A DNA stretch of 64,000 nt from Penicillus capitatus (Eukaryota > Plantae > Chlorophyta). Below are positions 4,019 to 61,353 of the stretch, one piece after another (within the stretch, counting starts at the first letter, position 1; every line of letters begins with the position of its first letter). A program made the translations under genes and the position numbers. The stretch lies in the NCBI GenBank assembly GCA_965649825.1, contig OZ287695.1, positions 973,081 through 1,037,080 of the forward strand, written 5' to 3'. The notes under the pieces were generated by a model. It worked only from the letters and a program-made list of their open reading frames with translations, searched no databases and was not told the DNA's origin.

Positions 4019-4035
4019 ACTGAAGACAAGAATGC

Positions 4036-17664: not shown

Positions 17665-18202
17665 AGAATCCGGCCAGTGGCTTCCTTCACCGCTGAATAC
17701 CTGACAACTTCCATCATCGCAGGAGAACGAATGGTCGTCAACAGGATACTTTGTCGGGGTCGTTCGTGTCGAGTTTGCGAATCCCGCAACGAATAAGCGG
17801 ATGTCTGCCGAGGCTGTTCAAGGATGGGTCGACGCAGTGTGCCGCTGTGACCACCCATTGCGGCCGAATGAGGAATCCTCCGCAGCGGTGAATTCCATCA
17901 TCTCGTTTGGAGAGACTGCACATGTATGGGAACCGTCTCTCAGGTGCCTGTTCACCCTGTGAGAAAGACCGGCGTCGAAACGTGAATTAATGCGCCCTGG
18001 ACAAACTTACGATGATATAGGAAGTGAGTCGGGGCTTAGAGGCTAATGCTTCTGAACCGTTAAAGCACATATCCGCGTCGGAAATGTCGACCCGGGTGAC
18101 AGTACTTTCTATTTCTCGACATGCTGCTCTATGGAGGTGCAGGAGGAGAAGCAGAAAGAAAAGATAACCGAGACGACAACATGAAACGCCGGAAAGCTTC
18201 AT
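15261..18202 (-). CDS. Secreted serine protease-ankyrin fusion, copy C4 (8 internal ANK exons)
   Basis: ATG 18202, signal peptide MKLSGVSCCRLGYLFFLLLLLHLHRAAC. The catalytic triad motifs are intact. The 3' two-thirds is near-identical to C2. Confidence 0.87.
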
Positions 18203-19105
18203 ACCAAAGAACGTGCGTGTTCTGCAGCAGTAGCGTACGCTTAAGTAATGCGGGTAATTGAGCCATTAAAATGCCTACTTCCCTGTAGCGTCCCAGTGAC
18301 TGATAGACGTTGGGAGGAAAAGAAACCGCTGGTGCATCTCCTATTTTGTTCTGGGCTTCCCACTAACTGAGTCGTCATGCATGGGGATAAGTGCTTCCCG
18401 TGATGCCTCTGCACACACGCTTCTCTGCCTGTCATCAGATCGTATCGAGAAGTCTAAGGATCCGATATATCTAGTGGATAATAAATATGAACTCAGCGGC
18501 TGCGAAGATGTCAAGGGTGCGTTGCAGATCGATGCATCCAGGAATTCACGAACGTGCCAATCACTGCTTGCATTCTTATCGAGCATGATCCGGCAACATT
18601 GTGGTTGCAGTTTGCGTCGATTGAGGTTGAACCCTGAACCAAGACCTTCAACGACGCCAGTAGTACATTCTGGACATTAAGAGATCCTGTCGACAACAGT
18701 AGGTGTGGCGTTGTCGTTTACATCTTGCCATTGACAAGCGATGGCTTTCCCAGGTATGCTTCATCCGACAGCATTCTACGGAAGTGACAGTCTCAGATTG
18801 CAGAAGGATGAATTACACAACTAGTGCAGCAAGACAACTTAGGTGGGCATCTAGACCACGGAGGGAGAACAGAGCAGAGGAAGGTGGAACAGACAGCATG
18901 GCTTAAGATCGCCACATCCGCTTCAAAATGTTGTTTCCATGTGCACTGACTGGGACATGCACTGCGAAGGCTATGTGAGACATGAACTCATTTAAGCCGT
19001 TTCCATCGAGCTGTCTTGACATTTTGTTAGCTCGAGGCCAGTTACGTCTACTGTCACTTCACTTCAGTTCGGCCGGTTCTTTCCGGCTTCTGCCCGCTAT
19101 TTGTT

Positions 19106-25414: not shown

Positions 25415-28179
25415 TCACGGACGAACGAGTTTCTCAAGGGAGATTCGTGTCGATTTCTTGCAGATCTGCCACCCAGAGCAGATGGCGTCGAAAGGCGTTC
25501 TTCCATACGCCTCAGTCACCGTCTTCGATGCTCCGGCATTCACCAGAATCTGTAACGCATCGTCAGACTTTGTGATGGCACCTCTGACTCACCTTTGCCG
25601 TTTTTAGCTTTCCGGTTTCTGTGGCTTTATGAAGTGGAGTTTCTCCATGTAGATCGGCCGCATTGACGTCGGCCCCTGCTTCAAGCAACAGCTTCAACCA
25701 ACAACAACGTAGACAGGAAGAAAAGCAAATTAACATTCACCTTAACAACTTTGGGTTTACTACAGGCGAAAGCGGCTCTATGAAGTGGAGTTTCTCCATT
25801 GTCATCCACCGCATTGACGTCGGCCCCTGCTTCAAGCAGCAGCTACAATCGACAACATGAACAAAGAAAGGAAGCACATCGGCTTGTACCTTCACAATGT
25901 GGGGGTTTTCACTGAAGCCGACTGCAATATGAAGTGGCGTCGTTCCGTCTTCGTCGACGACATCGATCTTCGCTCCGCGCTTGAGGAGCATCTGAGAATT
26001 GACAGCTTCCGCCGACAAGGCAACAAAGTAAACGCGCAACTGACCTCGACCACCTCGGCGTCATCGTAATATGCCGCTTCATGCAAAACAGTAGATCCAA
26101 GGTTGGTGGCGTGGTTGATGTCCGCTCCGTTCTCAAAGAGAAGCTGACAGTCAACAAATTCTGCCAATGGGGTAACGAAGCTAATGCCTAACTGACCTCG
26201 AGGAACTCGACGTCTCCGGCATATGCTGCAAAAAACAGAGGAGTCTCTCCGTTGCTGGCGACCTTAATTACGTCCGCTCCATGGTCAATGAGTACCTAAG
26301 GAACTTGATGAGAACGCAGGAGCACATCAGAACTCGCCTGAGCAGTTTTCAAGTGTCCGTAGAATGCAGCCTTGTGTAAGGGTGTCTCTCCAGAGTTTTC
26401 TTCGGCGGCGTTCACTCTAGCATTATGGTCGAGAAGAATCTGCGAACAAACGTCTGAGCAGACGCCTGAGATTATATTGTTGATTACCTTCACCACCTTC
26501 GTGTGTCCGTTCTCCGCCGCCACATGCAACGGAGTCACTCCGCTGTCGACGCTGAGCTTGTTTACACCAGCTCCATACTCCAGAAGAACCTTCAATCGCG
26601 CACACAGAGATTTAGCAGACAGAACCGAACCGTCCAGACTCTGTAATAAAGAGTGGACTCAAAGGAACGTACTACCTTAGTGCATTCTGGCGCATTGTAA
26701 AACGCCGTCCAGTGCAACAAAGCAAAATGCACCAGGGTCGTGATTCTATACCGAGTTGGAACGACAGACGAGTAAAAAGAATCTGGATCCAGTTCCTCCA
26801 GAATGGCGGCTTCTAACTTCATGACATCGTCATCCGTTATAAAGCCAATCGCTTCCTATAGAATGTCTGTCCGTTCACCACAATCTTTATTGTTAAGGCA
26901 ACCTTAATCAGCATTGTCTGCGAGAGTTCACTCAGCCGTTTGCGCTCTTCTTCAATTTCCTGTTGTTCCAACTTCTAGTCTTTTGGTTTATCATCTACAG
27001 GCTCATCTACCTTCGAGAAACGTACATTAACGGGCGACGGTTCTTCTGATGGTTCTGGCATCTGCACAAAGAGAGCAGAAGAAGAAGAGAATTTAGAGAA
27101 AAACTCACCTCTGGACCTTCACCGGTTCTTTTCAGAATCCAGTCCGAGAATGCACCGATACTTGTGTAGATGGAAGGTGAGGTATCAGTGCAGTTCTCGG
27201 ACCCCATTGACTCTAAGCCGACAAGCAGATCGAATTCTGGATTCCCTGCTTCTATACTACCCCCAGGTCTGTGAGGAATCAACAGCGGACCGCCAGAATC
27301 ACCTTCAGAAGACAAGGCTTGGCAGAGAGCAATGCTAACAGGTAAGAGTATGACCTTTGCATGTGTCGTCGTTCACGAATTCAGCACAGATCGAGTGATT
27401 CTTGACAGCATCGCCCAGATGTTCTTTGCGGTTGTTACGTTTCACATGTATAAGGCTCTCTGCCATCTGTAGGGTATTGGGATTCGTTCCAGTCTTGTCG
27501 AGTCCCCAGCCGAGTGCGACAAACAGTTTGCGTGTGCGGAATTCGCCTACCTGAATGTCCATCGACGGCAGTGTGACATTCGCTTCTCTGTTTAGTTTGA
27601 CGACGGCGATGTCGTATCCATCCCTCACATCGCCGGTCCAAGACTCAGGCCAGTGACTCTTCACTCCGCTGAACGCCTAGTACCCTTCACTTAGAAAAAA
27701 AGTAATTGGCCGTAAGCAGGTGGCTACTGTTTCGGGTTTATCCGCGTCGAGCTTGTGAACGCCACAGCGGATAAGCGGATTTCTGCCAATATTGTCAGGA
27801 TGGGCGGGGTCGACGCAGTGTGCTGCGGTGACCACCCATTGTGGTCGAATGAGGAAACCCCCGCAGCGGTGGATTCCATCGTCTCGTCTTGAAAGACTGC
27901 AAGCGTAAGGGAATCGTCCCTCAGGTGCTTCTTTACCCTACGAAAAACGGAGTTTAAATATGAATCAATGCGCGCTTTACAAACTCACGCTGAAATACAA
28001 AGTGCCACGCGGCTCAGTGGCCGATGCTTCTGATGCGCAAAAACACACCCGCGTCGGAAATGGCACTTCGGGGTGGCAGTACCTTCTTTTCCTTCACACG
28101 CTGCTCCGTGGAAGTGTAGGAGGACCAGCAGAAAGAAATGGTAACCTAGACGGGAACGCGAAACACAGAAGAACTTCAT
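25415..28179 (-). CDS. Secreted serine protease-ankyrin fusion, copy C6 (7 internal ANK exons)
   Basis: ATG 28179, [28 protein letters not shown]. The triad is intact (DDTCK|GDSGG). An in-frame TAG at 26975-26977 in the linker must be removed by a 51-nt GT-AG intron (26960-27010) to reach the ANK exons. Confidence 0.8.
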
Positions 28180-29092
28180 ACTGAATACAAATATGCGTTC
28201 TGCAGCAATGGCAGGCGTTTAAGTAATGCGGGTAATTGAGCTATTAAATCGCTTACTTCTCTGCAGCGTCCCAGTGACTGTTAGACATCGCGCATGGACG
28301 AAACGGTCCGTACGTCTCCTTTATTGATCTGAATTTGCTGAGTATTGAGGTGATATGTGTAGGGCGTTGTGCTTTTCAAGATATCTTTGCACACACGCTT
28401 CTTTCTCTCCTGTGCCGTCATATCTAATCCGGTCAGTCTACACGTTTAATGTTTTGGCGGATAATGAATGTGAAATCAATGTCTGTGAAGATGTCAAGAA
28501 TACACTGCTGATCGATGCATCCAATAATCGATGAACGTGTCAATGGCTGCTTGCATTCTTATCGAGTATAATCCGGCAACATTGTGGTTGCAGTTTGCGT
28601 CGATTGAGGTTGAACCCTGAACCAAGACCTTCAACGACGCCAGTAGTACATTCTGGACATTAAGAGATCCTGTCGACAACAGTAGGTGTGCATCTGTCGT
28701 TTACATCTCGCCTTTGACATTTCATGTCTTTCCCAGGTTTGCTTCATCGGACAGCATTCTACGGAAGTGACAGTCTCAGATTGCAGAAGGATGAATTACA
28801 CAACTAGTGCAGCAAGACAACTTAGGTGGGCATCTAGACCACGGAGGGAGAACAGAGCAGAGGAAGGCGGAATAGACAGCATGGCTCAAGATCGCCACAT
28901 TCGCTTCAAAATGTTGTTTCTATGTGCACTGACTGGGACATAAACTGCGAAGGCTATGCGTAACATCGACTCATTTAAGCCGTTTCCATCGAGCTGTCAC
29001 AATATGCTGTCGTATCGAGGCCAGTTACGTCTACTGTCACTTCGCTTCAGTTCGGCCGATACCTTCCGACACCAGTCCAGTCGCTGTTCGTT

Positions 29093-32000
29093 ATGAAGGA
29101 CGATAAGAAAACGTGGATGGTCACGCAGCCGAAGTCGCGATCTTCTCTGGATCCCGATTCGACGTTGGAAGTCCATTCGTCGTCGTCTTCGGCGGAAGTC
29201 ACTTCGTTGGACGATGCGGAGATCAGACGCATCTTGCGCGTTGGTCGCCTACTCATCAAGAGTGAGAAATTCAAAGAAGCCCTCCAGATGACCGAACAAG
29301 TCCGTCGGAAGCACCCAAGACACGCAGAGCTGCTGGTGCTGGAAGGAGAGTGTATGAAGAACTCGGGGAACCTGACAAAGGTTAGTGAGTGCTACATGAG
29401 GATTCCTGTACGAAAGTCAGTGTGGAGTCGCAGGCCATAGCTTGCTTTGCGAAAGCAGAGGCGTACGATGCCAGAAATGCAGAAACCGTAATGCATCTGG
29501 CTGACGTTCATCACCAGCAAGGGAATCTCCAATCATGCCTCGAACTCGTGCAGAGAGCCTGCGATTTAAAGCCAGAAAACAAAGTTCAGTGCCATGACCA
29601 TTCGTGCGAGAGCTTACGGTGTGAAAAATTTCGCAGGAGTTCAAGAAGACATTGGCAGGAGTACTGACCGATCAAGGAACAGTTCTCAAGAACGAAGGTA
29701 CTCTCGGTCACACATCGTGACGCTGTCCTGCAATCGAGCACCTCAGGGAACGGAGACGAAGCGGCGAGCAGATACCGGGAAGCACTGGAGGCCCATCCTG
29801 GGTTCCCTCCAGCTCTGTACAATCTTGCAGTGTGCTACGCAGAATCCCAGCAGGTGAGCATCGCCTTCACTGAGCTGATGGAGGGTTTGAGCATTGCCAG
29901 GTGGACAAGGCAATGGAGTATTACAGGATGACAGTTGAAGAGGATCCTTCTCACGTCATGGCCTGGGGGAACATGGCAGCCATCCACTTCGATCGCCGCC
30001 AGTTTCGGGAATCACTCCACTGTCATCGCCAGGCACTGGCAGTGCAGCCAGAAATGGACGAGCTGCGACAGAGCTGCGCGCGGCTGCTCGCTGCCATGGG
30101 AGCACAGTCAAAAGCGGAGGGGAACACAGAAGAGGCCCTCCGACTGTACCACGAAGCCCTCTCGCAGCACCCAGCCGTAAGTCACACATCTCACTCCTGC
30201 TCGGGGTGTGCGAGAAAGTGTGAAGTGTGTCGAGGCGATGTACAATCTGGGTGTCGCTCTGGCCGAGAACGGAGAGAAGGAGAAAGCGATCTTCATGTAC
30301 GAGACAGCGATTCGTTACAACAATCGTCTCCCCGAAGTCCACAACAACCTCGGCGTCCTCCACAAGGATATGGGGAGAGATCAGAAGGCAATTCAGTGCT
30401 ACCAGAACGCCCTCGCCATACAGCCCGACTTCGCCATGGTGCCTCTCTTCGAACGGAGGGTCTCGAAGAGACGTGTTGTTGTTCCCAGAGTCTGAGCAAT
30501 CTGGGACTGCTCTATGCCATGCAAGGACAGGCGGCAGCGGCCATCAGCAACATCGAGGCCGCCATTCGGTCCAACCCGCAGTACTTCGAGGCCTACAACA
30601 ACTTGGGCGTCGTTCAGAAGGACATCGGGCTGACGCACGAAGTGTGGATCGTTTCCTCTGTGCTTGTCTTGCACGATCCCTTTTGTCTGGGTCCCTAGTC
30701 GTTGGAGTCCTACAAGAAGTGTCTTACCATCGCCCCGGAAAGCAGAAGTCCGGCGGACAACTTCCTCCTTGGACTGAACTACGTGAGGTGCGGAGCATCC
30801 CGAGAAGTCAGCGATCATCACTTGAAGTGGGGCGTCTCCCTCTCGGAACGCGTCCCTCAGCTCCCACCTCTCGATCCACCGTCTAGAGACTTCAATCCGG
30901 AAAAGGTCCTCAAAGTGAGGCCACATGTTCTGGAGGAATGCCGGAAAGATGTCTTCGCGGAGTAGGTTGGTTACGTATCCGGCGATCTGTGCACGCACTC
31001 CGTATCGTACTTTGCCGAAGCGCCGCTCTCCGAACACGATCCGGGTCAGATCGAGTTGATCGTGTACAACTGTTCGCCCAGAGCAAGCGAGACCGTTTTC
31101 CACATCGAGAGTGACTGGGGCTGTTCCTTAGTCGGATGACAAGACGGCGTTGCTCCAAGGCAAAGTGAAAGGGATCAAAGGGACGTGGAAGGAGGTGACG
31201 CATTTGACCGAGCAGGGACTGGCAGGGCAGATCCGTCAGGACGAAGTGGACATCCTCGTGGAGCTCAGCGGACACACTTTTCACAACAGACTGGGAGCGC
31301 TTGCCATGAAACCGGCTCCCGTTCAAGTGACGCCGGTACTTCTCTCTGAGAAATAACTGCTCCTGGTCGTTCAGGTTACGTGGATCGGCTATCCGAATTC
31401 CACGGGTCTGGCGCAGATCGACTACCGCATCACAGATGTCCACTGTGACCCAGAAGAGACAACACAGGTGCTTGGATCTCACACAATACACCCCCTTCTC
31501 AGCTGCTCTCTGTCGCCAGTGTTTCTCCGAGACGCTCGTCCGGCTGCCCCACTGCTTCCTGTGCTACACGCCGTACGCCGATCCTCCGCCTCCCATGCCA
31601 GCTCCGTGCCTGGAGAACGGATACGTGACGTTTGGATCTTTCAACAATCTCGCCAAGATCACGGACGAAGTGGTCAGAGTGAGTCGTCAGATATCTGTCT
31701 TTCGTTTTCCTCGCACGAGAAGAGTGACGTAGACCTGGTCCGAAATTCTCTTGGCCATTCCCGAAGCCCGTCTCGTTCTCAAGAACAAGAGCTTCGCATG
31801 TGCGTCCACCCGAGCGCAGTTCAGTCAGCGCTTCGAACTGGAGGGCATTGCCTCCTGGCGCATCGATCTGCTGCCCCTCTCCGTGCAAACCAAAGAGCAT
31901 CTGTCCCTGTACTCGCTCATGGACATCAGTCTGGACCCGTGGCCGTATGCTGGCAAGCCGCCATTCCCTGCAGGATCCTCGTCTGCAGCTTCCTCTGCCT

Positions 32001-32321
32001 GTAGGCACCACCACAACCTGCGAGAGCTTGTTCATGGGTGTACCCTGTTTGACGATGGCCGGAAGGTGTCACGCGCAGAACGTCGGAGTGAGTCTGATCC
32101 GTGCGGTGGGTTTGGATGAGAGCTGGATTGCCACTTCGATCGAAGACTACAAGCAACGCGCCGTGGAGAAGGCATCCGACTTCGAGGCCCTGTCCAAGCT
32201 GCACATGCATCTGCGCGTCCAGATGCTCAGCTCTGAGCTCTGCAATGCCAGAGGACACGTGCAGCTCCTGGAATGCGAGTACAGGAAGATGTGGAGGAGA
32301 TGGACAGAGATGAATGCGTGA
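29093..32321 (+). CDS. SPY: SPINDLY-type protein O-fucosyltransferase (GT41; TPRs plus catalytic domain), copy 1
   Basis: TPR motifs include EAMYNLGVALAENG, EVHNNLGVLHKD and EAYNNLGVVQKD. Catalytic-domain motifs: [82 protein letters not shown] and HAQNVGVSL. All exons join in frame across ~50-nt introns, two of them GC-AG. Confidence 0.95.
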
Positions 32322-32873
32322 TGGCGTTCAAATATTCGATCTAGAAATTCCGCTGTTATCAAAATCCGTCTCGAAAGATTCGAACTACTTACCGTCGCTC
32401 CGTCTTCGAGTTAAGCAACAACAGCAACCGTTCTTCTTGCATCCCGAGCCAAGAGTATCTCTACTTTCGCCATGGTTCGTCTGCACCACAGCTGCATCCC
32501 AGTTTCCTCGACACCGCCGCGGACAGCTGTCTTCTTCTAGACGGTGTCAAAGAGAGTGCAGGGCGCCAAGAACGACAAATTCCACGGCCACCGTCGTGGA
32601 CACCCCATCGTTTCGTCCGTCGAGGTGAGAGAGACCCCTCTCTTCGATGAGCAGGTCTCAGTTCTGTGACCGTGTTCGCAGAAGAAGCGTTTTCCGGTTG
32701 GCCCGGTGGTCCTGGGGTTCTTCATTTTCGTGGTGGTTGGGTCAGGTAGGCAGCCACGATGGGACAGCGGTCGATGTGACATTTGTGTGATGTGCTGCAG
32801 CGTTGCTGCAGACACTGAGAACGACGGGAGGTTTCTGACGAGAAGAAGCTCTGTGTTCTGGCAATAATCACGA

Positions 32874-33572
32874 CTAGTCATCTATCTCTGTGTGTCTGGA
32901 TCTGTGCAGTTCATGTGTGAGGTGTTGTCGCAAACAGTCGTTTGTTACAATCTCGACAATCTGTGTGATTATTCGATCTGTGGATGCTTGATACTGACGC
33001 CATTTCACAATCCCCTCTCTGAAGTATGCATCAACTGTCGGCGATGTCTCACAAGAGTAGCCGATTTGACCGGTTAAGCAGGGAGAGATATAGAAGGTAG
33101 AGCAGAGGGTTCGCTTTCCGCGATGATGATGTGACAGTCATCATCGGCATGGGTATAAGTACAGTGCTCGATGTCCAATGAGAACACTTGAGATAATAGA
33201 ATCCGATCTGCAGTTCTTCGGTCATCCATTGCCTGATCACTGACAATTGCTTGTCGTATTCGTCATTTCCGACGGCCTCGAATCTCGCTTGAGCAGACGT
33301 AGAGGAGCCATACGACAAGAAGCAGGAGAATACCGAGTTCTCGTTTTATCTGCTTACAGTGAACTGCAGGTATCCGAAACCCACAACACGGTTGTCAACG
33401 GATAAGGTGATGAGAAGAGTGGCGGGCTGTGTCTCGTCTCCCAGGGAGACTGCCTCGGTTCGTGCTGGAAGGCGAATAGACGCTGACTCCTAGCGCATGC
33501 GCGCCAGCCAGAGGCAGTCACATCGTGATTGTCGCTGAACCAGGCCACGGGAATCACCAACAAGCTCTCCAT
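32874..33572 (-). other. Possible multi-exon gene or pseudogene of unknown function (copy 1)
   Basis: Protein-like frames are conserved with the duplicate (ESASIRLPARTEAVSLGDETQ...GYLQFT; NDEYDKQLSVIRQWMTEE; VKWRQYQ...IVEIVTNDCLRQHLTHEL) and have plausible splice sites. I could not build one complete model. Confidence 0.35.
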
Positions 33573-33810
33573 GCAGCATCAGCTGCTAGATCGCAGGCGG
33601 CAGATACGATCGAATTGCAATCCGTGTTCGTCAGTTAACGAGGCAGTGCCGAATCCGGGACACGTCGCTTCGCGTTTGCTGTCTGCATTAAGAACGCGAT
33701 TTCCAGCTGCATGGTACAAATTCGAGTACAATTCTCGACCTCTGTCATTTCCCTTTGCGCGTTTGTGTCTTCTGTCCCTCCGAAGCTCCTCGAACTCCGT
33801 TTCCGGCACC

Positions 33811-34175
33811 ATGTCCGCTAACGCAGCCCTGTTCGTCTTCGCCGCTCTTCTCTGCCTCCACGTGGCAAGATCCCTTCCTTTACCAGAAACCCTTAATGTC
33901 GACTGTTTGCTGTTCTGGTAGGCGAGTGCCTACCGTCCCACTACAGAATCCGTCGTCGACGAGAACGGACACGTCGTCGGCAAACTGTCCTTGAAAGAAG
34001 GATTCACCGATCACGGTAGGGCTATGTGGCGAAATATTTTGTCTACTGTGGTTGTGCGGTTGCAGTTCCGTGTGAAAAGTACTTAAATAGTCCGTGTCCA
34101 ATCCTGTCGACTACGAAGGAGAGTCTTCAGATTTGCCGAGAGTTTGTGTGTGGAAAAGGCGAGTTGCCGGATTGA
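33811..34175 (+). CDS. Small secreted Cys-rich protein, about 85 aa (3 exons), paralogue 1
   Basis: Spliced sequence: MSANAALFVFAALLCLHVASA-YRPTTESVVDENGHVVGKLSLKEGFTDHVPCEKYLNSPCPILSTTKESLQICREFVCGKGELPD-TGA. The introns are 57 nt (33865-33921) and 50 nt, matching the local intron size. Confidence 0.72.
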
Positions 34176-35502
34176 TTCAGTCAAGTGTCGAATAAGGCTG
34201 GCTGTGTGTAGGGCATTATAGAGAATGGGAGTACTACAAGAAGAATGGAGAGTGCAAGGGATTCATGGCTAAGCCCCCCTATGAACAACCGCCTGGATGT
34301 GTGAGAGCATCATGCCCCTAGTGAACGCGTCTCCTGACAGAAGAAAGCCCAATCGCATTTCTTCCGGTATAAGTTCTGGAGATTTTGCATGACTCTCTGG
34401 ATCGATCCGGTTTCTTTGAATGTTCGATTTAATGAACATCGCAGCCTTTTTTTGAACCCGGTCTCGCGAACACGCGTCCCTTCCAACGAACATGCGAAGC
34501 GAAGGGGAATCGTTGTCCTCGTCGATATCTTTCTTTGATCAACATGCCATGCGTGCTTTGTTTTTCGCGGCAGATGCCTGGCATCCGAACGCGGACCCCA
34601 TCACTGCTGAATGGCAAAGAGCTGTGCTGTCGTTCTGGTGTCTTTTATCAATCCGGAGGTGATGTGATGGACGACGGAATGGAGACACCTAAATCGACGC
34701 CGATGTAAACTGCTATGCGGGAAACCACTGGATGGCCGCAGAAAGCCCGTTAGCGATGAATCCTGCTTTCAAGATACTGCTGGTCTATTTTTGGGGTTGG
34801 GTTGACGCATTTCCTGATCGAATGCTTCTCTTTCGCGTCGAAGCCGTGCGACGAATCGTTGGACGTCGATGTATATGGTTTGTTTCTGTGTCATCATCTT
34901 CGACATGGTCTTGCTGCTCTTCTCCGGCATGAAACGTCACATCAACATCGTTGAATAAACAATGCATGACATGACTTGTCCGTCTTGCTACGACACGTCG
35001 CCGCTCGGCCAAATGCCGAAAGAGCTTGTTGCGCAGAGGATACTAAAACAGCAAATGTACGCGTCGTCGGAAAAGGCAAAGAACTGTTGCGTGTTGGACT
35101 GAACTGTCTTTCACTTTCCGTTTCTCTGAGACGAAAGGTTTATATGTATCCATCGCATCGTGTAAGAAAACCGGTTTGCATTCTTCGGTCGTATTTCTTG
35201 ACTTCTACTGTGGTCTCTATCTACTCCAAGTCGCAGTCAATTGCAGCAATTCACACGATCCTTACAGATTGTTACAAAACACTTCACGCCATTCGTTTTT
35301 ATTGATCCATATACATTTGAGTTCAGGAAAGAGAATGATACGTTTATAGAGAACGACGAAACAAGAACAAAAGCAGCGACAGAAAGAGTTTATAGACAGG
35401 CATCATTTGTGCCACAGTCGCCACTTGTCTCCTGCGCAAACTGTGTTACCTAAACAGACACGAAAGCGGGTTGAGATAGATAAACAGTGTCAGAACAAAA
35501 AG

Positions 35503-36342
35503 CTACTCTGGGCGATAGCCGAGAACGCAATCTGCGCAATCAATCAAATCATTCAACTGATTCTTGAGCCAGCAATGCATAAAATCTCTTCTCCAAACGA
35601 ACGCAATGCACTCTACACGACACAAAGCGGAATTAGCCATCTGAGAACAGAACAGAGACAGAAGGACCAGGATTGTCTTCGCAGTACTCGCCACAAACGT
35701 TGGCGTCACTGACGCCTACGTAAGTGGGGAAAGGGGGAATGTCTCCGCCGTAACTGTCGACGCCATATTGAGGATTGTATTTTGCGTCCACCTCCTGCGA
35801 CAAGACGTTTGTCCGAATTCGAACACAGGAAACAGCCTACCCGTACCTCGAAGTTCACGCTTTCGCATGCCATGCAGTCTATGGGCTGGTTGAGTCTTAT
35901 CTTAAGATAACAATGATGCTGGAAAACGAAAGCCACGCAGCCTGACGCATTGACGTGACATTCTTACCATCACAAAAATCAACAGCAAATGCTACTTTGT
36001 CCATCATTAGAGGAATCTCGTCGGCGCTGGCATTCAAGACAGCACTCATGTGCGTTGTCAATACCTAAAATAGGAGAATCGAGTGTGTCGCCACCCGGCC
36101 AATCTATCCCAAGAACAATGTGGTCGCAGTCTATACGTGCACAGCAACAGTCCATCGAGCACGCGACACGAGTCGATATTCAAACCTGCGCACAGTTCTC
36201 TTCCGCGTCGGGAAAGACCTTCGTCCGGACGCGAATAGACCCCCTGCGACATATACGCATCAGAGTCAACGTCTTCTCTTCAACGGCGCAATGTTCGCAC
36301 CGCGAAGAACAGACAGACGAGGAGACCGAATGCGAATCTCAT
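35503..36342 (-). CDS. Secreted protein with two tandem PAN/apple-like domains, about 188 aa (6 exons)
   Basis: Five GT-AG introns of 52-57 nt join MRFAFGLLVCLFFAGVYS...GIDWPGGD...ECCLEC...CVAFVFQHHCYLK...GVDSYGGD...VCGEYC...ECIAFVW...HCWLK...IDCADC. The pattern D-x-x-G-x-D, CC/CxxxC, C-x-A-F and C-[YW]-LK matches the PAN_4/apple consensus. Confidence 0.8.
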
Positions 36343-44257: not shown

Positions 44258-44501
44258 GCATTTTTAGTCCACAGTATCCTTCTTTTCATTTAAACACAGT
44301 GACAAAAGGACATTTAATTTGTTGTCGACAACGACATCCCCCAGTTGTTTGTGTTCTCTCTTTGGCCCACACCATACATGCATGTTTAATTGAACGAACG
44401 ATCCGTGGCAGTCTAAGCAGAAACATAATGTCATTGAGCATCGATCATGAGCTATCCTCTCTCCTTGATTATGTCCCGCAGAAAAACAATCTTTCAGTCA
44501 A

Positions 44502-51086: not shown

Positions 51087-54006
51087 TCACGGACGAACGA
51101 GTTTCTCAAGGGAGATTCGTGTCGATTTCTTGCAGCTCTGCCATTCAGAGCAGATGACATCGAAAGGCGTTTTTCCATTCTCCTCGGTCACCGTCTTCGA
51201 TGCTCCGGCATTCACCAGAATCTGTAACGCATCGTCAGACTTTGAGGTGGCACCTCTGACTCACCTTTGCCGCTTTTAGCTCTCCGGTTTCTGTGGCTTT
51301 ATGAAGTGGAGTTTCTCCATGTAGATCGGCCGCATTGAGGTCGGCCCCTTCTTCGAGTAACAGCTTCAACCAACAACAACGTAAACAAGAAACAGAAGCA
51401 AATTAACATTCACCTTAACAACTTTGGGTACACTATTGTACCTAGCGGCCAAATGAAGAGGGGTTTCTCCGTCGTCATCGACCGCATTGATGTCGGCCCC
51501 TGCTTTAAGCAGCAGCTACAACCGACATCATGAACAAAGAAAGGAAGCACATCGGCACGCACCTTGACAACTTCGGGGTCACTATTGGAACTGGCGGCAA
51601 CGTGAAGTGGAGTTTTTCCATGTTTATCGACCGCGCTGATGTTGGCTCCTGCTTCAAGCAGCAGCTACATGCAACAAGCACGTAGACAAGAAAACAGAAG
51701 CCTATCGCTATACACCTTCACAATGTCGGGGTTTTCATTGAAGCCGGCTGCAAAATAAAGTGGCGTCATTCCGTCTTGGTCGACGGCATCGATCTTCGCT
51801 CCGCGCTTGAGAAGCATCTGGCAATCGACAGCTTCCGCCAATAAGGCGACAAAGTAAACGCGCAACTAACCTCGACCACCTCGGCGTCATTGTAATTTGC
51901 CGCTCGATGCAAAACAGTAAATCCAAAGTTGGTGGCATGGTTGATGTCCGCTCCGTTCTCAAAGAGAAGCTGACAGTCGACAGTTTCTGTCAATGGGGTA
52001 ACGAAGTTAATGCCTAACTGACCTCGAAAAACTCGACGTCTCCGTTGTATGCTGCCATAGAAAGAGGAGTCTCTCCGGTGTTGTCGACCTTAATGACGTC
52101 CGCTCCATGGTCAATGAGTACCTAAGGAACTTGCTGAGAACGCAGGAGCACATCAGAACTCGCCTGAGCAGTTTTCAAGAGTCCGTAGAATGCAGCCTTG
52201 TGTAAGGGTGTCTCTCCAGAGTTTTCTTCGGCGGCGTCCACTTTAGCGTCATGGTCCAGAAGAATCTGCGAATATACGTCTGAGCAGACGCCTGAGATTA
52301 TATTGTTGATTACCTTCATCACCTTCGTGTGTCCGTTTTCCGCCGCCACATGCAACGGAGTCACTCCGCTGTCGACGCTGAGCTTGTCCACACCAGCTCC
52401 ATACTCCAGAAGAACCTTCAATCCCGCGCACAGAGATTTAGCAGACAGAACCGAACCATCCAGACTCTGTAATCCAGAGTGGACTCAAAGGAGCGTACTA
52501 CCTTAGTACATTCTGACGAATTGTAAAACGCCGTCCAGTGCAACAAAGCAAAATGCTGCAGGCTCGTAATTCTATATTGACTTTTGACGACGGACGTGTA
52601 AAAAGAATCTGGATCCAGTTCCTCCAGAAGAGCGGCTTCTAACTTCATGACATCGTCATCCTTTATGAAGCCAACTGCTTCCTATAGAACCGTCTGTCCG
52701 TTCACCGCAATCTTCATTGTTAACGCAACCTTAATCATCTTTTTCTGCGAGAGTTCACTCAGCCGTTTGCGCTCTTCTTCAATTTCCTGTTGTTCCAACT
52801 TCTAGTCTTTTGGTTTATCATCTACAGGCTCATCTACCTTCGAGAAACGTACATTAAATGGCGACGGTTCTTCTGATGGTTCTGGCATCTGCACAAAGAG
52901 AGCAGAAGAAGAAGAGAATTTAGAAAAAAGCTCACCTCTGGACCTTCACCGATTCTTTCCAGAATCCAGTCCAAGAATGCACCGATACTTGTGTAGATGG
53001 AAGGTGAGGTATCAGTGCAGTTCTCGGACCCCATTGACGTTACACCGACGAGCAGGTCGAGTTTTGGATTCCCTGCTGCTACACTGCCTCCAACTGCGTT
53101 AGGAATCAACAACGGACCACCAGAATCACCTTCAGCAGAATAGACTTGGCAGAGAGCAATGCTAACAGGTAAGACTATAACCTTTGCATGTGTCGTCGTT
53201 CACGAATTCAACACAGATTGAGTGATTCTTGACAGCATCGCCCAGATGTTCTTCGCAGTTGTCACGTTTCACGTGTATAAGGCTCTCTGCCATCTGTAGG
53301 GAATTAGGCTTCTTTCCAGTCTTGTCGAGTCCCCAGCCGAGTGCGACAAACAGTTTGCCTTCGCGGAATTCGCCTGCCTGAACGTCCATCGACGGCAGTG
53401 TGACATTCGCTTCTCTGTTTAGTTTGACGACGGCGATGTCGTATCCATCCCTCACGTCGCCGGTCCAAGACTCAGGCCAATGACTCTTCACTCCGCTGAA
53501 CGCCTAGTGCCCTTCACTTAGAAAAAAAGTAAATGGCCGTAAGCAGGTGGCTACTGTTTCGGGTTTATCCGCGTCGAGCTTGTGAACGCCACAGCGGATA
53601 AGCGGATTTCTGCCAATGTTGTCAGGATGGGCGGGGTCGACGCAGTGTGCTGCGGTGACCACCCATTGTGGTCGAATGAGGAAACCCCCGCAGCGGTGGA
53701 TTCCGTCGTCTCGTCTTGAAAGACTGCAAGCGTAAGGGAATCGTCCCTCAGGTGCTTCTTTACCCTACGAAAAACGGAGTTTAAATATGAATCAATGCGC
53801 GCTTTACAAACTCACGCTGAAATACAAAGTGCCACGCGGCTCAGTGGCCGATGCTTCTGATGCGCAAAAACACACCCGCGTCGGAAATGGCACTTCGGGG
53901 TGGCAGTACCTTCTTTTCCTTCACATGCTGCTCCGTGGAAGTGTAGGAGGACCAGCAGAAAGAAATGGTAACCTAGACGGGAACGCGAAACACAGAAGAA
54001 CTTCAT
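51087..54006 (-). CDS. Secreted serine protease-ankyrin fusion, copy C8 (8 internal ANK exons)
   Basis: Duplicate of C6 with one extra ANK exon. The triad is intact. The linker TAG at 52802-52804 lies inside a candidate 51-nt intron (52787-52837). Confidence 0.8.
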
Positions 54007-54913
54007 ACTGAATACAAATATGCGTTCTGCAGCAATGGCAGGCGTTTAAGTAATGCGGGTAATTGAGCTATTAAAGCGCTTACTTCTCTGCAGCGTCCCA
54101 GTGACTGTTAGACATCGCGCATGGACGAAACGGTCCGTGCCTCTCCTTTATTGAGCTGGATTTTCTGAGTATTGAGCCGATGTGTGTGGGCATTACGCTT
54201 TCCGAAATGTCTCTGCACATACGCTTCTCTGCCTGTCATCAGATCGTATCGAGAAGTCTAAGGATCCGATATATTTAGTGGATAATGAATATGAACTCAG
54301 CGGCTGCGAAGATGTCAAGAGTGCGTTGCAGATCGCTGCATCCAGGAATTCATGAACGTGTCAATGACTGCATGCATTCTTATCAAGTATAGTCCGGCAA
54401 CATTGTGGTTGCAGTCTGGGCCGATTGGGGTTGAACCCTGAACCAAGACCTTCAACGATGCCAGTAGTACATTCTGGACATATAGAGATCCTTTTGACAA
54501 CAGCAGGTGTGGCGTTGTCGTTCACATCTCGCCTTTGACATTTCATGTCTTTCCCAGGTATGCTTCATCGGACAGCATTCTACTGAAGTGACAGTCTCAG
54601 ATTGCAGAAGCATGAATTGCACAACTAGTGCAGCAAGAGAACTGATATGGGCATCTAGACCACGGAGGGAGAACAGAGCAGAGGAAGGTGGAATAGACAG
54701 CATGGCTCAAGATCGCCACATCCGCTTCAACATGTTGTTTCCATGTGCACTGACTGGGACATGCACTGCGAAGGCTATGTGAGACATGAACGCATTTAAG
54801 CCGTTTCCATCGAGCTGTCTTGACATTTTGTTACCTCGAGGCCAGTTACGTCTACTGTCACTTCACTTTAGTTCGGCCGATACCTTCCGATACCCGTCAT
54901 CTCGCTGTTCGTT

Positions 54914-57900
54914 ATGAAGGACGATAAGAAAACGTGGATGGTCACGCAGTCGCAGCAGTGCTCTTCTCTGGATCCCGATTCGACGTTGGAAGTCCATTCA
55001 TCGTCGTCTTCGGCGGAAGTCACTTCGTCGGACGATGCGGAGATCAGACGCGTCTTGCGCGTTGGCCGCCTACTCATCAAGAGCGAGAAATTCAAAGAAG
55101 CCCTCCAGATGACCGAACAAGTCCTTCGAAAACACCCAAGACACGCAGAGCTGCTGGTGCTCGAAGGGGAATGTCTGAAGTGCATCGGAAGTCTGACAAA
55201 GGTCAGTGTCGCACGAGGTTTCCTGTACGAAAGCGCGATGATGTCGCAGGCCATAGTTTGTTTTGCGAAAGCGGAGGCGTACGATGCCAGAAATGCAGAA
55301 ACCGTAATGCATCTGGCTGATGTTCATCACCAGCAAGGGAATCTCCAATCATGCCTCGAACTCGTGCAGAGAGCCTGCGATTTAAAGCCAGAAAACAAAG
55401 TTCAGTGCCATGACCATTCGTGCGAGAGCTTACGGTGTGAAAAATTTCACAGGAGTTCAAGAAGACATTGGCAGGAGTACTGACCGATCAAGGAACAGTT
55501 CTCAAGAACGAAGGTACTCTCAGTCACACTCTCAGTCACACCTCGTGACGCTGTGCTGCAATCGAGCACTGTAGGGAAAGGAGACGAAGCGACGAGCAGA
55601 TACCGGGAAGCATTGAAGGCCCATCCTGGGTTCCCTCCAGCTCTGTACAATCTGGGAGTGTCCTACGCAGAATCCCAGCAGGTGAGCATCGCGTTCGCTG
55701 CACTGATGGAGGGTTTGAGCATTGCCAGGTGGAGATGGCAATGGAGTATTACAGGATGACAGTTGAAGAGGATCCTTCTCACGTCATGGCCTGGGGGAAC
55801 ATGGCAGCCATCCACTTCGATCGCCGCCAGTTTCAGGAATCACTCCACTGTCATCGCCAGGCACTGGCAGTGCAGCCAGAAACGGACGAGCTGCGACAGA
55901 GCTGCGCGCGGCTGCTCGCTGCCATGGGAGCACAGTCGAAAGCGGAGGGGAACACAGAAGAGGCCCTCCGACTTTACCACGAAGCCCTATCGCAGCATCC
56001 AGCCGTAAGTCACACATCTCGCTCCTGCTCGGGTGTGCGAGAGAGTGTGAAGTGCGTCGAGGCGATGTACAATCTGGGTGTCGCTCTGGCCGAGAACGGA
56101 GAGAAGGAGAAAGCGATCTTCATGTACGAGACAGCGATTCACCACAACAATCGTCTCCCCGAAGTCCACAACAACCTCGGCGTCCTCCACAAGGATATGG
56201 GCAGAGATCAGAAGGCGATTCAGTGCTACCAGAACGCCCTCGCCATACAGCCCGACTTCGCCATGGTGCCTCTCTTCGAACGGAGGATCTCGAAGAGACG
56301 TGTTGTCGCTCCCAGAGTCTGAGCAATCTGGGACTGCTCTATGCCATGCAAGGACAGGCGGCAGCGGCCATCAGCAACATCGAGGCCGCCATTCGGTCCA
56401 ACCCGCAGTACTTCGAAGCATACAACAATCTGGGCGTCGTTCAGAAGGACATCGGGCTGACGCACGAAGTGTTTCGATCGTTTCCTCTGTGCTTGTCTTG
56501 CACGATTCCTTTTGTCTGGGTCCCTAGTCGTTGGAGTCCTACAAGAAGTGTCTTACCATCGCCCCGGAAAGCAGAAGTCCGGCGGACAACTTCCTCCTTG
56601 GACTGAACTACGTGAGGTGCGGAGCATCTCCAGAAGTCAGCGATCATCACTTGAAGTGGGGCGTCGCCCTCTCGGAACGCATCCCTCTGCTCCCACCTCT
56701 TGACCGTTTGTCCAGAGACTTGAATCCGGACAGGGTCCTCAAAGTGAGGCCATACGTTCCGGAGGAATGCCGGAAGGATGTCTTCGCGGAGTAGGTTGGT
56801 TACGTATCCGGCGATCTGTGCACGCACTCCGTATCGTACTTTGCCGAAGCGCCGCTCTCCGAACACGATCCGGGTCAGATCGAGCTGATCGTGTACAACT
56901 GTTCGCCCAGAGCAAGCCAGACCGTTTTCCACATCGAGAGTGACTGGGGCTGTTCCTTAGTCGGATGACAAGACGGCGTTGCTTCAAGGCAAAGTGAAAG
57001 GGATCAAAGGGACGTGGAAGGAGGTGACGCATTTGCCCGAACAGGGACTGGCAGAGCAGATCCGCCAAGACGAAGTGGACATCCTCGTGGAGCTCAGCGG
57101 ACACACTTTTCACAACAGACTGGGAGCGCTGGCCATGAAACCGGCTCCCGTTCAAGTGACACTGGCACTTCTCTCTCAGAAAGAACTGCTCTGGTCTTAA
57201 AGGTCACGTGGATCGGCTATCCCAATTCCACGGGTCTGACGCAGATCGACTACCGCATCACAGATGTGCACTGTGACCCAGAAGAGACAACACAGGTGAT
57301 TTCGAACTCATTCAAACCAGCATCCTTCTCAGCTGCTCTCTGTCGACAGTGTTTCTCCGAGACGCTCGTCCGGCTGCCCCACTGCTTCCTGTGCTACACG
57401 CCGTACGCCGATCCTCCGCCTCCCACGCCAGCTCCGTGCCTGGAGAACGGATACGTGACGTTCGGGTCGTTCAACAATCTCGCCAAGATCACGGACGAAG
57501 TGGTCAGAGTGAGTCGTCAGACATCTGTCTCTCGTCCTCGCACGAGAAGAGTCACGTAGACCTGGTCCGAAATCCTGCTGGCCATTCCCGAAGCCCGTCT
57601 CGTTCTCAAGAACAAGAGCTTCGCATGTGCGTCCACCCGAGCGCAGTTCAGTCAGCGCTTCGAACTGGAGGGCATTGCCTCCTGGCGCATCGATCTGCTG
57701 CCCCTCTCCGTGCAAACCAAAGAGCACCTGTCTCTCTACTCGCTCATGGACATCAGTCTGGACCCGTGGCCGTATGCTGGCAAGCCGCCATTCCCTGCAG
57801 GATCCTCATCTGCAGCTTCCTCTGCCTGTAGGCACCACCACGACCTGCGAGAGCTTGTTCATGGGTGTGCCCTGTTTGACGATGGCCGGGAGGTGTCACG

Positions 57901-58148
57901 CGCAGAACGTCGGAGTGAGTCTGATCCGTGCTGTCGGTTTGGATGAGAGCTGGATTGCCACTTCGATCGAAGACTACAAGCAACGCGCCGTGGAGAAGGC
58001 ATCCGACTTCGAGGCCCTGTCCAAGCTGCACATGCATCTGCGCGTTCAGATGCTCAGCTCTGAGCTCTGCAATGCCAGAGGACACGTGCAGCGCCTGGAA
58101 TGCGAGTACAGGAAGATGTGGAGGAGATGGACAGAGATGAATGCGTGA
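54914..58148 (+). CDS. SPY: SPINDLY-type protein O-fucosyltransferase, copy 2
   Basis: Same exon structure and motifs as 29093-32321. I saw no disabling change. Confidence 0.93.
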
Positions 58149-58696
58149 TGGCGTACAAATATTCGATCTAGAAATTCCGCTGTTATCAAAATCCGTCTCA
58201 AGATATTCGAACTACTTACCGTCGCTCCGTCTTCGAGTTAAGCAACAACAGCAACCGTTCTTCTTGCATCCCAAACCAAAGTATCTCTGCTTCGCCATGG
58301 TTCGTCTGCACCACAGCTACATCCCAGTTTCCTCGACACCGCCGCGGACAGCTGTCTTCTTCTAGACGGTGTCAAAGAGAGTGCAGGGCGCCAAGAACGA
58401 CAAATTCCACGGCCACCGTCGAGGACACCCCATCGTTTCGTCCGTCGAGGTGAGAGAGACCCCTCTTCGATGAGCAGGTCTCAATTCTGTGACCGTGTTC
58501 GCAGAAGAAGCGCTTTCCGGTTGGCCCGGTGGTCCTGGGGTTCTTCATTTTCGTGGTGGTTGGGTCAGGTAGGCAGCCACGATGAGACGGCGGTCGATGT
58601 GACATTTGTGTGATGTGCTGCAGCGTTGTTGCAGACACTGAGAACGACGGGAGGTTTCTGACGAGAAGAAGCTCTGTGTTCTGGCAATAATCACGA

Positions 58697-59396
58697 CTAG
58701 TCATCTATCTCTGTGTGTCTGGATCTGTGCAGTTCATGTGTGAGGTGTTGTCGCAAACAGTCGTTTGTTACAATCTCGACAATCTGTGTGATTATTCGAT
58801 GTGTGAATGTTTGATACTGACGCCATTTCACACTCCCCTCTCTGAAGTATCTATCGGCTCTCGTCGACGTCTTACAAAAGTGGCCGATTTGACCGGTTAA
58901 GCAGGGGGAGAGAGATAAAGAATAGAGCAGAGGGTTCGACTTCCGCGATGATGATGTGACAGTCATCATCGGCATGGGTATAAGTACAGTGCTCGATGTC
59001 CAATGAAACAGTTGAGGTAATAGTGTCCGATCTGCGGTTCTTCGGTCATCCATTGCCTGATCACTGACAATTGCTTGTCGTATTCGTCATTTTTGACGTA
59101 CTGGAATCTCGTTTGAGCAGACGCAGAGGAACCATACGATGAGAAGCAGGCGAATACTAAGTTCTCGTTGGATCTGCTTACAGTGAACTGCTGATATCCG
59201 AAACGCACAACGCGGCCGTCAACGGATGAGCTGATGAGAAGAGTGGTGGGCTGTGTCTCGTCTCCCAGGGAGACTGCTTCGGTTCGTGCTGGAAGGCGAA
59301 TAGACGCTGACTCCTAGCGCATGCGCGCCAACCAGAGGCAGTCACATCGTGGCTGTTCCCGAATGCGTGCACGAGAATCACCAGCAAGCTCTCCAT
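58697..59396 (-). other. Possible multi-exon gene or pseudogene of unknown function (copy 2 of 32874-33572)
   Basis: Homologous frames to copy 1. A 1-nt indel relative to copy 1 lies near 59005. Confidence 0.3.
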
Positions 59397-59634
59397 GCAA
59401 GGCCAGCTGCCGGGACAACAGGCGACGGATACGATCGAGTCGGAATCAGTGTTCCTCAGTTGACGAGGCAGTGTCGAATCTGGACACGTCACTTCGCGTT
59501 TGCTGTCTGGATTAAGAACGCGACTTCCAGCTGCATGGTACAAATTCAAGCAGAATTCTCGACCTCTGCCATTTCCCTTTGCGCGTTTGTGTCTTCTGTC
59601 CTTCCGAAGCTCCTCGAACTCCGTTTCCAGCACC

Positions 59635-60001
59635 ATGTCCGCGAACGCAGCCCTGTTCGTCTTTGCCGCACTTCTCTGCCTCCACGCGGCAAGATCCCTT
59701 CTTCTACAAGAAACCCTTGATGGCGACTGTTTGCTGTTCTGGTAGGCGAGTGCTTACCGCCCCACCACAGAATCCGTTGTCGACGAGAATGGACACGTCG
59801 TCGGAAAACTGTTCTTGAAAGGAGTCGCCAATCCAAGTATGGTTGGCTGTGTGGCGAAATCTCCCTCTTCTTGACTGTCCTCGCGTATGTGAAGTCTATG
59901 TTAAGAAGAACTACGACGTTACCTCCTACTTGACTTACGCCGATACTTGGGAGGAATGCAGAGATGATGTGTGCAGCACATGTGCGTTACAATTCTGTTG
60001 A
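59635..60001 (+). CDS. Small secreted Cys-rich protein, about 83 aa (3 exons), paralogue 2
   Basis: Spliced sequence: MSANAALFVFAALLCLHAASA-YRPTTESVVDENGHVVGKLFLKGVANPIYVKKNYDVTSYLTYADTWEECRDDVCSTCALQFC-TGA. The second intron is 59837-59894. Confidence 0.65.
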
Positions 60002-61353
60002 ATCGAATGCCGAATGGCTGTGTGTAGCCTCGTTTTTTGTATGGGATTTTCGCCCCGATCTCCCAAGCGGCAGTTTATCATGCACGGGATACAATGCCTT
60101 TCCAACCAGCGAACTCCCACCAGGTTGGATGAGAGGCACGTGCGAAGAAGACTAAACGCGTCTCCTAACAAGAGAAGAGCCTATCTCATTCTTTCCGGTA
60201 TAAGTTCTGGAGATTTTGAATGACTCTCTGGAATCATCCGGTTACCTCACAGTTCGATTTAATCAGCATCGCAGCCGGTTTTTGAACCCGTCTCGCGAAC
60301 ACACGTATCCTCTGACGAACATGCGAAGCGAACGAGGATCGCTATTCTCGCCGATTTCTTCCTATCCGCATGCTCACCTAGCTTTTTTCGCGGCAGATAC
60401 CCGGTCTTTGAAATCGGGACTGTCAGGAGGCCACATGCACGCCCGCGAAGATTGGTAAGCGACGGTACGAGATATCGCGGAGGATGGGTAGATACATGCA
60501 TGCTGCAGAGGTGAAAGTTTCTTTCGCGCAAGGCTATCGAGACGCTGAAGACGCTAATGACAGCATCCGATCTTCGGTCACCATCCGTTTCATACGATCA
60601 CGTTCGCGATAACCACACACATCGAAAAGAGATTTGGATGCTGGACTATTGTATTCAAACGACCGACTTTGCCAACGGTCTTCATCACAATACTTTACAC
60701 TGACCTTCGGTTCTCATCAACAAACTCGCCAGACATCGTGTTTCTTTCCGGAGCTGACGTCATCAACGCTTCGCTTTCCCTTTGGCTACAGCAAATGCAG
60801 TTGGTGGCAGACTCACTGGGGCAAATTGGAATGCGTGGATGGCTCATTTGTCAGATCCTGCACTAGCTCGACAGATCAGGGATGTTGTTGAGTGCGTTCA
60901 GCTGTTCGTGTTCTTTCACTGTCCCTCTGTACAAACGTTGCGTGTCGGCGCAATCGGAGGATTTGACAATGGCGGCTTGATTTCTGCTGTGGCGGATTTC
61001 TGTCTCGCGATCCGAATTCCGTTGTGTTATACTTGAACGATGCTCTTCTCCACTTCTTGAAGCCGATCTCGATACATAGTCCTAATCAGAAGAGCAAGAA
61101 GTGTAACACACGTTCGCGGCAAGACACGACAACGTCGCTTTCGCCATGCGTCCATCAGCTTTTCTACTCCCAACGAAACGCGAAGAACTTGTTGACGGCG
61201 CTGTTTAGAAGACAGCTGCTTTACCGTTTCCCAAAAACGATCTTTCAAGGAATAAGAGAGAATCGTCCGCACTGTCGTACGCACAGAGAGGTCCATTTTT
61301 TCGGTCATTAGAATTTGTACTCTTTGTGGTGGTGGTCGCTTTATCCATCCGCC

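Follow-up and report, generated by a model that had tools for sequence, protein, structure and literature searches.

A green-algal family of predicted small secreted four-cysteine proteins with hypervariable exons between conserved flanks and mini-introns

What is known of genes whose coding parts diverge faster than the non-coding sequence around them? In snake-venom PLA2 genes the exons evolve faster than the introns, and at MHC loci the introns are homogenised around the exons for peptide binding. The described phenomenon closest to the one reported here is the 'unusual conservation' seen in the genes for small secreted salivary gland proteins (SSSGP) of the Hessian fly, in which non-coding parts are more conserved than the mature coding sequence; their copies are clustered or tandem, and positive selection has been invoked for them together with concerted homogenisation of the non-coding parts (PMC2955719). 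Conotoxins (PMC4278219) and mussel MgCRP-I (PMC4558851) are multigene families that combine a conserved pre-pro region with a hypervariable Cys framework. In plants, the cysteine-rich peptides of the DEFL/NCR, SCR/SP11, LURE and RALF types are secreted and fast-evolving, and some act in self/non-self or partner recognition (PMC4282536, PMC5557327).

The family described here has two copies in a window of 64,000 nucleotides, the whole stretch of DNA that was analysed, and resembles each of these systems in part. As in the SSSGP genes, to which it has no sequence relationship, the flanks and introns 2 and 3 are more conserved than the variable coding exons. However, SSSGP are insect effector genes and the present family is green-algal, its variable part is divided between two tiny exons, the mini-introns being conserved, and a framework of four Cys and one Trp is retained together with a constant N-terminal segment of 19 aa. 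The pattern is also that of conotoxins and MgCRP-I, again without homology, but a conserved dibasic pro-peptide site is absent, the product, with 92-117 aa left once the signal peptide is removed, exceeds theirs in size and is mostly acidic, introns measure 44-71 nt rather than kilobases, and there is no venom or haemocyte context. With the plant cysteine-rich peptides it shares the kingdom-level lineage (Viridiplantae), predicted secretion, a Cys framework and fast evolution, whereas number and spacing of the Cys differ and no Pfam model of those families matches. As in PLA2 and MHC genes, the exons have diverged more than the intervening introns, and dN is close to dS, both exceeding intron divergence; yet the proteins are unrelated, the scale in the alga is tens of nucleotides, and no venom or adaptive-immune context is known.

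The best explanation overall, to which we assign a probability of roughly 0.7, is a lineage-restricted family of predicted secreted four-Cys proteins, shaped by exon-confined hyperdivergence and recombination; that they act as recognition or defence ligands is the part of it held with low confidence. The evolutionary pattern as such is already known from toxin, effector and immune-peptide genes; new are the lineage, the orphan family and the four-exon model. Our literature search found no such family described for green algae.

The four-exon gene and its relatives

The initial annotation had placed two paralogous small genes at 33811 and 59635, nearly identical at their starts, and both are borne out. 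Each has a hydrophobic, signal-peptide-like N-terminus. Of the ten nucleotide differences between their first 40 codons, nine are silent (pS 0.29, pN 0.01), which identifies this stretch as coding and subject to purifying selection. Likewise seen are the collapse of similarity after ...GKLxLK and the return of homology in the 3' flank, from 34324/60155 onward at 82% nucleotide identity; the pattern far exceeds chance. The genes are, as proposed, spliced genes with a signal peptide, but they have four exons and not three, and the exon-1 donor lies 3 nt further downstream than assumed, that is, 3 nt downstream of CAC/GT in an alignment of 11 copies. Copy 1 spans 33811-34321 and encodes 116 aa, copy 2 spans 59635-60155 and encodes 119 aa (Table 1).

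Table 1. Features of the two window copies and of the segmental duplication. Identity is the mean pairwise nucleotide identity of each segment among ten intact copies of the family, given once per segment; shuffled controls reach.47-.53.
Feature	Position	Strand	Details	Identity
Segmental duplication, left copy	25629..33997		8.4 kb, 92.5% identity to 51453-59821 (window self-comparison)	
Segmental duplication, right copy	51453..59821			
Copy 1, conserved 5' flank	33430..33810	+	predicted promoter and 5' UTR, non-coding; nhmmer profile match of 5' block at 33510-33987	.79
Copy 1, exon 1	33811..33864	+	54 nt; MSANAALFVFAALLCLHV; most of the signal peptide	.87
Copy 1, intron 1	33865..33921	+	57 nt; phase 0; GC-AG, GCAAGA...GGTAG; in-frame TAG	.76
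Copy 1, exon 2	33922..34015	+	94 nt; ASA/YRPTTESVVDENGHVVGKL, then variable tail	.86 (first 66 nt);.59 (tail)
Copy 1, intron 2	34016..34065	+	50 nt; phase 1; GTAGGG...TGCAG	.62 (shuffles.49)
Copy 1, exon 3	34066..34158	+	93 nt; hypervariable; ends C-x4-C (CREFVC)	.51 (shuffles.47)
Copy 1, intron 3	34159..34211	+	53 nt; phase 1; GC donor, GCGAGT...TGTAG	.70
Copy 1, exon 4	34212..34321	+	110 nt including stop TAG 34319-34321; hypervariable; W-E-Y ... C-K-G-F ... C-V-R-A-S-C-P	.56
Copy 1, conserved 3' flank/UTR	34322..34530	+	candidate hairpin; nhmmer match of 3' block at 34323-34517	.76
Copy 2, conserved 5' flank	59250..59634	+	nhmmer match 59334-59811	
Copy 2, exon 1	59635..59688	+		
Copy 2, intron 1	59689..59745	+	GC-AG; in-frame TAG	
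Copy 2, exon 2	59746..59836	+		
Copy 2, intron 2	59837..59894	+	58 nt; GTATGG...TGAAG	
Copy 2, exon 3	59895..59981	+	87 nt; ends CRDDVC-ST	
Copy 2, intron 3	59982..60027	+	46 nt; GTGCGT...TGTAG	
Copy 2, exon 4	60028..60155	+	128 nt including stop TAA; W-D-F ... C-T-G-Y ... G-W-M-R-G-T-C-EED	
Copy 2, conserved 3' flank/UTR	60156..60360	+		

Further family members, which had been thought worth seeking, exist outside the window. Inside it, neither tblastn of the peptides nor nhmmer with profiles built from the conserved 5' and 3' blocks found copies beyond the two. A protein search with the earlier gene model, followed by a profile to which the conserved upstream ORF had been added, returned 15 clusters of unspliced ORF calls, all from two metagenome-style ENA assemblies (ERZ26696514 and ERZ25074695). 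From these, 12 loci with 13 gene copies were retrieved, giving n = 15 with the window copies. One of them, at L002 6001-6620, is a pseudogene: 1 nt is inserted where exon 1 ends, an in-frame TAG interrupts exon 3, and exon 4 runs on because its stop is lost.

The family-wide unit of about 1.1 kb consists of the conserved 5' flank, four exons, three introns (phases 0, 1 and 1) and a conserved 3' UTR. Solely under this model do 14 of the 15 copies have an uninterrupted reading frame, with splice sites in homologous columns and phases kept, and each of the three introns carries stops or has a length that is not a multiple of 3. For exon 3, seven lengths between 87 and 156 nt are observed, every one a multiple of 3 in 14/14 intact copies, and exon 4 ranges from 104 to 137 nt; its frame is open in the same phase in 14/15 copies and stops where the conserved 3' flank begins. 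The intron-1 donor G[T/C]AAGA sits in the same column throughout (GT in 7 copies, GC in 8, among them both window copies), and the 5' part of intron 2, GTA(T)GGCTGTGTGGCGAAAT, is kept in all copies. A few codons past C-x4-C follows the intron-3 donor, which reads GTACGT, GTGCGT or GTAAGT everywhere except in copy 1, and 46-58 nt after it comes a conserved acceptor, mostly TGTAG or AAAG. Introns of like size are found in neighbouring housekeeping genes (56 nt in ClpX, about 35-53 nt in a HECT gene). GC-AG splicing seems well tolerated in this genome, given the polymorphic donor of intron 1 and the GC donor of intron 3 in copy 1.

Could the genes be shorter nonetheless? The initial annotation let them end at 34175 and 60001, as three-exon genes of about 82-85 aa with four Cys each, toxin- or defensin-like and diversified by selection since their duplication. 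Read-through of intron 3 is indeed open as far as both stops, and the short form would have an even number of Cys (four). Moreover, the GC donor of intron 3 in copy 1 (GCGAGT) is unique among the 15 copies, so that copy 1 might make a short form; if this donor is unused, the product would shrink to 85 aa. However, the donor and acceptor columns of intron 3 are conserved in all copies, both stops (34173-34175 and 59999-60001) lie within that intron, and exon 4 continues the frame up to the conserved 3' flank. This downstream frame holds the invariant Trp and two of the four invariant Cys, whereas the last two 'Cys' counted for copy 2, in CALQFC, are intronic, which makes the tally of four in each copy partly an artefact. 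The mature parts are, besides, not cationic and match no defensin or toxin model, and the break between the window copies is the boundary of a duplication. We therefore regard genes of three exons as distinctly unlikely and retain the four-exon model, in which splicing, like secretion and disulfide formation of the products, is predicted from sequence. One practical consequence is that ORF-based gene calls on such genomes miss or mis-predict the family.

The coding and non-coding parts of the unit also differ in how they vary. Exon 1 has per-codon-position variabilities of.089/.033/.122, as expected for coding sequence, and the first 66 nt of exon 2 vary at third positions; coding periodicity is lacking in intron 1. 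The flanks, too, lack codon periodicity, the 5' flank in the frames of this strand; the latter is therefore treated as promoter and UTR, and the idea that it is another gene was set aside. In the 3' UTR of all copies lies a candidate hairpin, GTTCTGGAG...CTCTGGAAC, enclosed by CCGG/CCGG (about 34372-34404 and 60203-60235). RNAalifold lists 13 one-sided substitutions in it, all compatible with pairing through G-U wobble, and no double compensatory change; an Rfam scan of the whole window gave no matches.

Protein architecture and searches for relatives

The intact copies encode products of 113-138 aa. They begin with MSANAALFVFAALLCLHAASA, which hardly varies, shows an n/h/c layout and has A-x-A ahead of Y22; it is predicted to be a cleavable signal peptide with the cut after A-S-A. 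It is followed by the near-invariant constant segment YRPTTESVVDENGHVVGKL and by a variable domain, about 55-95 aa long and probably held by disulfide bonds. Within this domain C73, C78, W86, C95 and C115 (copy 1 numbering) are invariant in 13/13 proteins and one Gly is present in 12 of them, with about 20% residue identity elsewhere. The Cys are spaced C-x4-C-x(16-25)-C-x(18-20)-C, the last spacer being 19 in 11 of the 13. The Cys pattern first noticed between the window copies, CRxxVC within otherwise almost unalignable mature regions, is thus real but incomplete: the true framework, C-x4-C ... W ... C-x-G ... C, extends over exons 3 and 4, and along it the mature regions do align, if weakly.

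At the junction of constant and variable parts there is no conserved KR, RR or KK, dibasic pairs being scattered or absent. A cleaved pro-peptide, implied when this stretch was called a pro-region, is therefore unsupported, and the mature protein may retain the constant segment. The secreted parts are neutral to acidic, with net charges of +1 to -11, a range that rules out a cationic antimicrobial peptide as the default. The label 'defensin-like' consequently has to be dropped, both for this charge and because no defensin, Kazal or RALF model of Pfam matches. More broadly, the toxin-, effector- or immune-peptide-type pattern survives in its constant N-terminus and its very divergent C-terminus with a Cys framework, but not in any match to a defensin or toxin model.

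The searches assigned the proteins to no family or fold. Pfam returned nothing above threshold for ten spliced models and only noise at E ≤ 1. Defensin, DEFL, NCR and SCR proteins would have 6-8 Cys, an alpha-beta motif and a Pfam match; here there are four invariant Cys with other spacing. The RALF motifs RRxL and YISY are absent from 13/13 proteins, which do not match PF05498. DUF3659, a fungal VDxxGxVVGK repeat, was considered and rejected, its matches (12.9-13.7 bits, E.06-.1) falling below the gathering threshold of 24.8 bits and being confined to the VVDExGHVVGKL motif of two of the ten proteins. A profile search of the PDB gave no match (best E = 0.2), and phmmer with copy 1 as query against 1.84 billion representative proteins retrieved only eight of the same ENA ORFs. 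An AlphaFold2 model of copy 1 with its unspliced relatives has a pLDDT of 45 and offers no fold-based clue. As far as these comparisons reach, the family appears to be a lineage-restricted, previously undescribed family of green algae that is homologous to no known Pfam or PDB family.

Divergence and recombination along the unit

Across the family, identity is close to the random level in exons 3 and 4 but reaches 70% in intron 3, which separates them; variability peaks in the two exons and dips to.13-.19 in the intron, the level of the flanks. In the constant part, pS is.26 and pN.08 family-wide. For the variable region, pairwise NG86 dN/dS is 0.43-1.10, with silent sites near saturation and uncertain alignments. 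Positive selection thus falls short of formal demonstration, as dN/dS is not clearly above 1 and the silent sites are strongly diverged.

The confinement of divergence to exons is seen most sharply in closely related copies. The loci L006 and L009 are collinear: they have the same POT1 neighbour, and some 3 kb to either side match at 94-98% identity. Within the unit, identity is 98-100% for the flanks and for everything from exon 1 to early exon 2, intron 1 included; it is 94% for intron 2 and 83% for intron 3 but just 57-68% for the exon-2 tail, exon 3 and exon 4, and the differences start at the first exonic base after each acceptor. Taken together, the variable exons are 59% and the introns 89% identical (p = 5e-9). 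The same holds for L004 and L008b, which are separated by about 19 kb on a single contig, with 65% in the variable exons and 88% in the introns (p = 9e-7). The last 60 nt of exon 4, identical in these two, count as a sign of recombination. In such near-identical collinear copies, the mini-introns between the variable exons are thus 83-94% identical.

Silent sites take part in this divergence. At conserved residues, L006 and L009 have silent changes in 5/20 codons of the variable exons and in 1/39 codons of the constant exons, a tenfold difference (p = 0.014), so that selection on amino acids alone is no explanation. Alternatives are old balanced lineages with homogenised non-coding parts, exon-targeted mutation, or effects of alignment and multiple hits. 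A programmed or targeted diversification of the two variable exons, by exon-focused mutagenesis or by gene conversion from cassettes, would account for the rise in silent changes next to introns that remain alike; comparable proposals exist for conopeptide genes and antigenic-variation systems, and the conserved intron and flank blocks could guide recombination. But L011 and L012, a haplotype pair of 99% identity, differ in the gene by just two adjacent nucleotides, which argues against a very high ongoing mutation rate; neither self-comparison of the window nor nhmmer revealed donor cassette arrays or repeats flanking the exons, and the silent-site numbers are small and their alignments uncertain. 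We consider such a dedicated mechanism highly improbable.

Pairs of collinear loci (L005/L007, L011/L012 and L006/L009) were also noted in the source assemblies, the identity levels found being 99%, 94-98% and 81%. These three levels suggest haplotigs and, in addition, an older duplication of genome scale, another subgenome or another related strain in the sample.

The two window copies belong to a segmental duplication. Its left copy contains one gene of the trypsin-ankyrin type, one SPINDLY-like gene and the 5' half of the small gene, and its right end falls inside exon 2. Accordingly, the 5' parts of the window pair are 88-93% identical, introns 2-3 only 62% and the 3' flank 79%, the latter values being ordinary family-level similarity; divergence in introns 2 and 3 matches that of the exons (62% vs 55%, not significant). 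This boundary, together with the diverged introns, indicates that recombination was involved as well as selection. The initial annotation had attributed the abrupt switch in this pair to diversifying selection; the pattern it invoked is found family-wide, but the switch itself marks the end of the duplication and does not reflect selection alone. The hypervariability of the family is separate from this boundary and more general.

Recombination is suggested elsewhere, too. L008a and L008b are 97% identical in the 5' part, with no difference in the first 120 nt, but 59% in introns 2 and 3, with a pS of.58 in the variable exons, and flank and centre of the unit give incongruent nearest neighbours. 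In addition, window positions 35079-37340 are 88% identical to L003 7522-9784, the region downstream of the family member there, and the 5' flank of L003 is closer to that of copy 2, though its downstream region matches that of copy 1. This mismatch may be read as a further sign of a mosaic locus history. Transposable elements were considered as carriers but are not favoured: the dispersed copies keep their introns, and self-comparison showed no other repeat around the two window copies.

Is diversifying selection then needed at all? Ancient, unrelated cassettes could be reshuffled between conserved flanks, or the C-terminal part could simply drift without constraint. Such histories would fit the near-saturated silent sites of variable exons even where flanks are identical, as in L008a/L008b, as well as the incongruent neighbours of flank and centre and the fact that this pair and the window pair differ in their introns also. 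However, the divergence in L006/L009 and L004/L008b respects the splice junctions to the nucleotide, which neither recombination tracts nor drift would do. Furthermore, 14 of the 15 copies have kept the frames, exon lengths in multiples of 3 and the framework of four Cys and Trp, and the chance for 75 random codons to be free of stops is about 0.03 per copy. An origin without diversifying selection is for these reasons unlikely in our view.

Our preferred reading, exon-confined hyperdivergence plus recombination, combines two processes. In the first, differences begin at the splice junctions while the mini-introns remain alike. In the second, recombination or gene conversion among members would keep the flanks and the constant part alike and swap whole variable cassettes; the window pair, with its 92.5% duplication ending inside exon 2, is such a case.

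Host lineage, neighbourhood and possible role

The hosts of the family appear to be chlorophyte green algae, as shown directly for one assembly. For the HECT domain encoded beside family members in L008, a locus of a related assembly, the closest named sequences come from Volvox, Monoraphidium, Asterochloris, Haematococcus and Coccomyxa, at 63-70% identity, compared with around 53% for land plants. In the window itself, the SPINDLY-type gene upstream of the small gene is in keeping with this placement. The window organism shares the family with both ENA assemblies, and its flanks are 85-89% identical to those of L003 (ERZ25074695).

Much of the window is occupied by other duplicated genes. An array of at least six diverged copies of genes with trypsin-like and ankyrin parts extends over about 0.5-29 kb and 45-55 kb and includes a 7 kb tandem duplication (2266-9228 vs 11373-18362, 96.8% identity). 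Within these genes, a 151-nt tandem repeat (6.4 copies with 92% match at 1302-2262; also at 7139-7422, 16262-16545 and 51301-51701) has a period equal to the sum of one ankyrin-repeat exon (about 99 nt) and one intron (about 52 nt); thus, whole exon-intron units seem to be tandemly amplified. A gene for a SPINDLY-type O-glycosyltransferase, with TPR repeats and a GT41 domain and Arabidopsis SPINDLY as best PDB match (E = 3.6e-27), is present twice, at about 29000-32300 and 55000-58150, owing to the 8.4 kb segmental duplication. A very large gene on the + strand (38700-44260) has long open exons, with ORFs of 732, 451 and 539 aa, an abundance of GGA-type repeats resembling a parallel beta-helix or Pmp-like protein and a multi-pass membrane C-terminus; it has no Pfam match at E ≤ 0.001.

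Given this setting, the small proteins had been suspected of inhibiting the neighbouring trypsin-like proteases, and they might more generally be partners of these, each window copy lying about 6 kb from a trypsin-ankyrin gene. But a single segmental duplication produced this linkage. The neighbours at the 12 other loci vary (Beta-prop_PLL, HECT, ClpX, FKBP, POT1, GSHPx, ABC and others), and none of the genes called there has a Trypsin Pfam match; the proximity is thus a by-product of the duplication. Nor did the Pfam search reveal a Kazal, Kunitz or other inhibitor signature. A functional tie to the proteases is, in our estimate, extremely improbable.

What, then, might the family do? With low confidence, the most likely function is that of a diversifying extracellular ligand in recognition or defence. 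On this view the constant segment would bind a shared partner, for sorting or anchoring or as a co-receptor. Specificity would come from the variable domain, with diversifying or balancing selection exerted on it by microbes, viruses or conspecific recognition. More specifically, and as a doubtful proposal, the genes could form a green-algal recognition system for mating, for allorecognition or for an innate-immune-like sensing or neutralising of microbes or viruses, with radically different specificity domains among alleles. If so, alleles or haplotypes would reside at one locus, as in self-incompatibility or MHC loci, and the exon-precise hyperdivergence, silent sites included, would represent either old balanced lineages with homogenised introns or exon-targeted diversification.

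Secreted families with a conserved frame and scrambled specificity usually mark a molecular front line, as in venoms, parasite effectors, immune peptides and mating recognition. With its mini-introns of about 50 nt, the present family is a very compact case for a question posed by conotoxin, venom and MHC genes, that of exons outpacing the introns between them.
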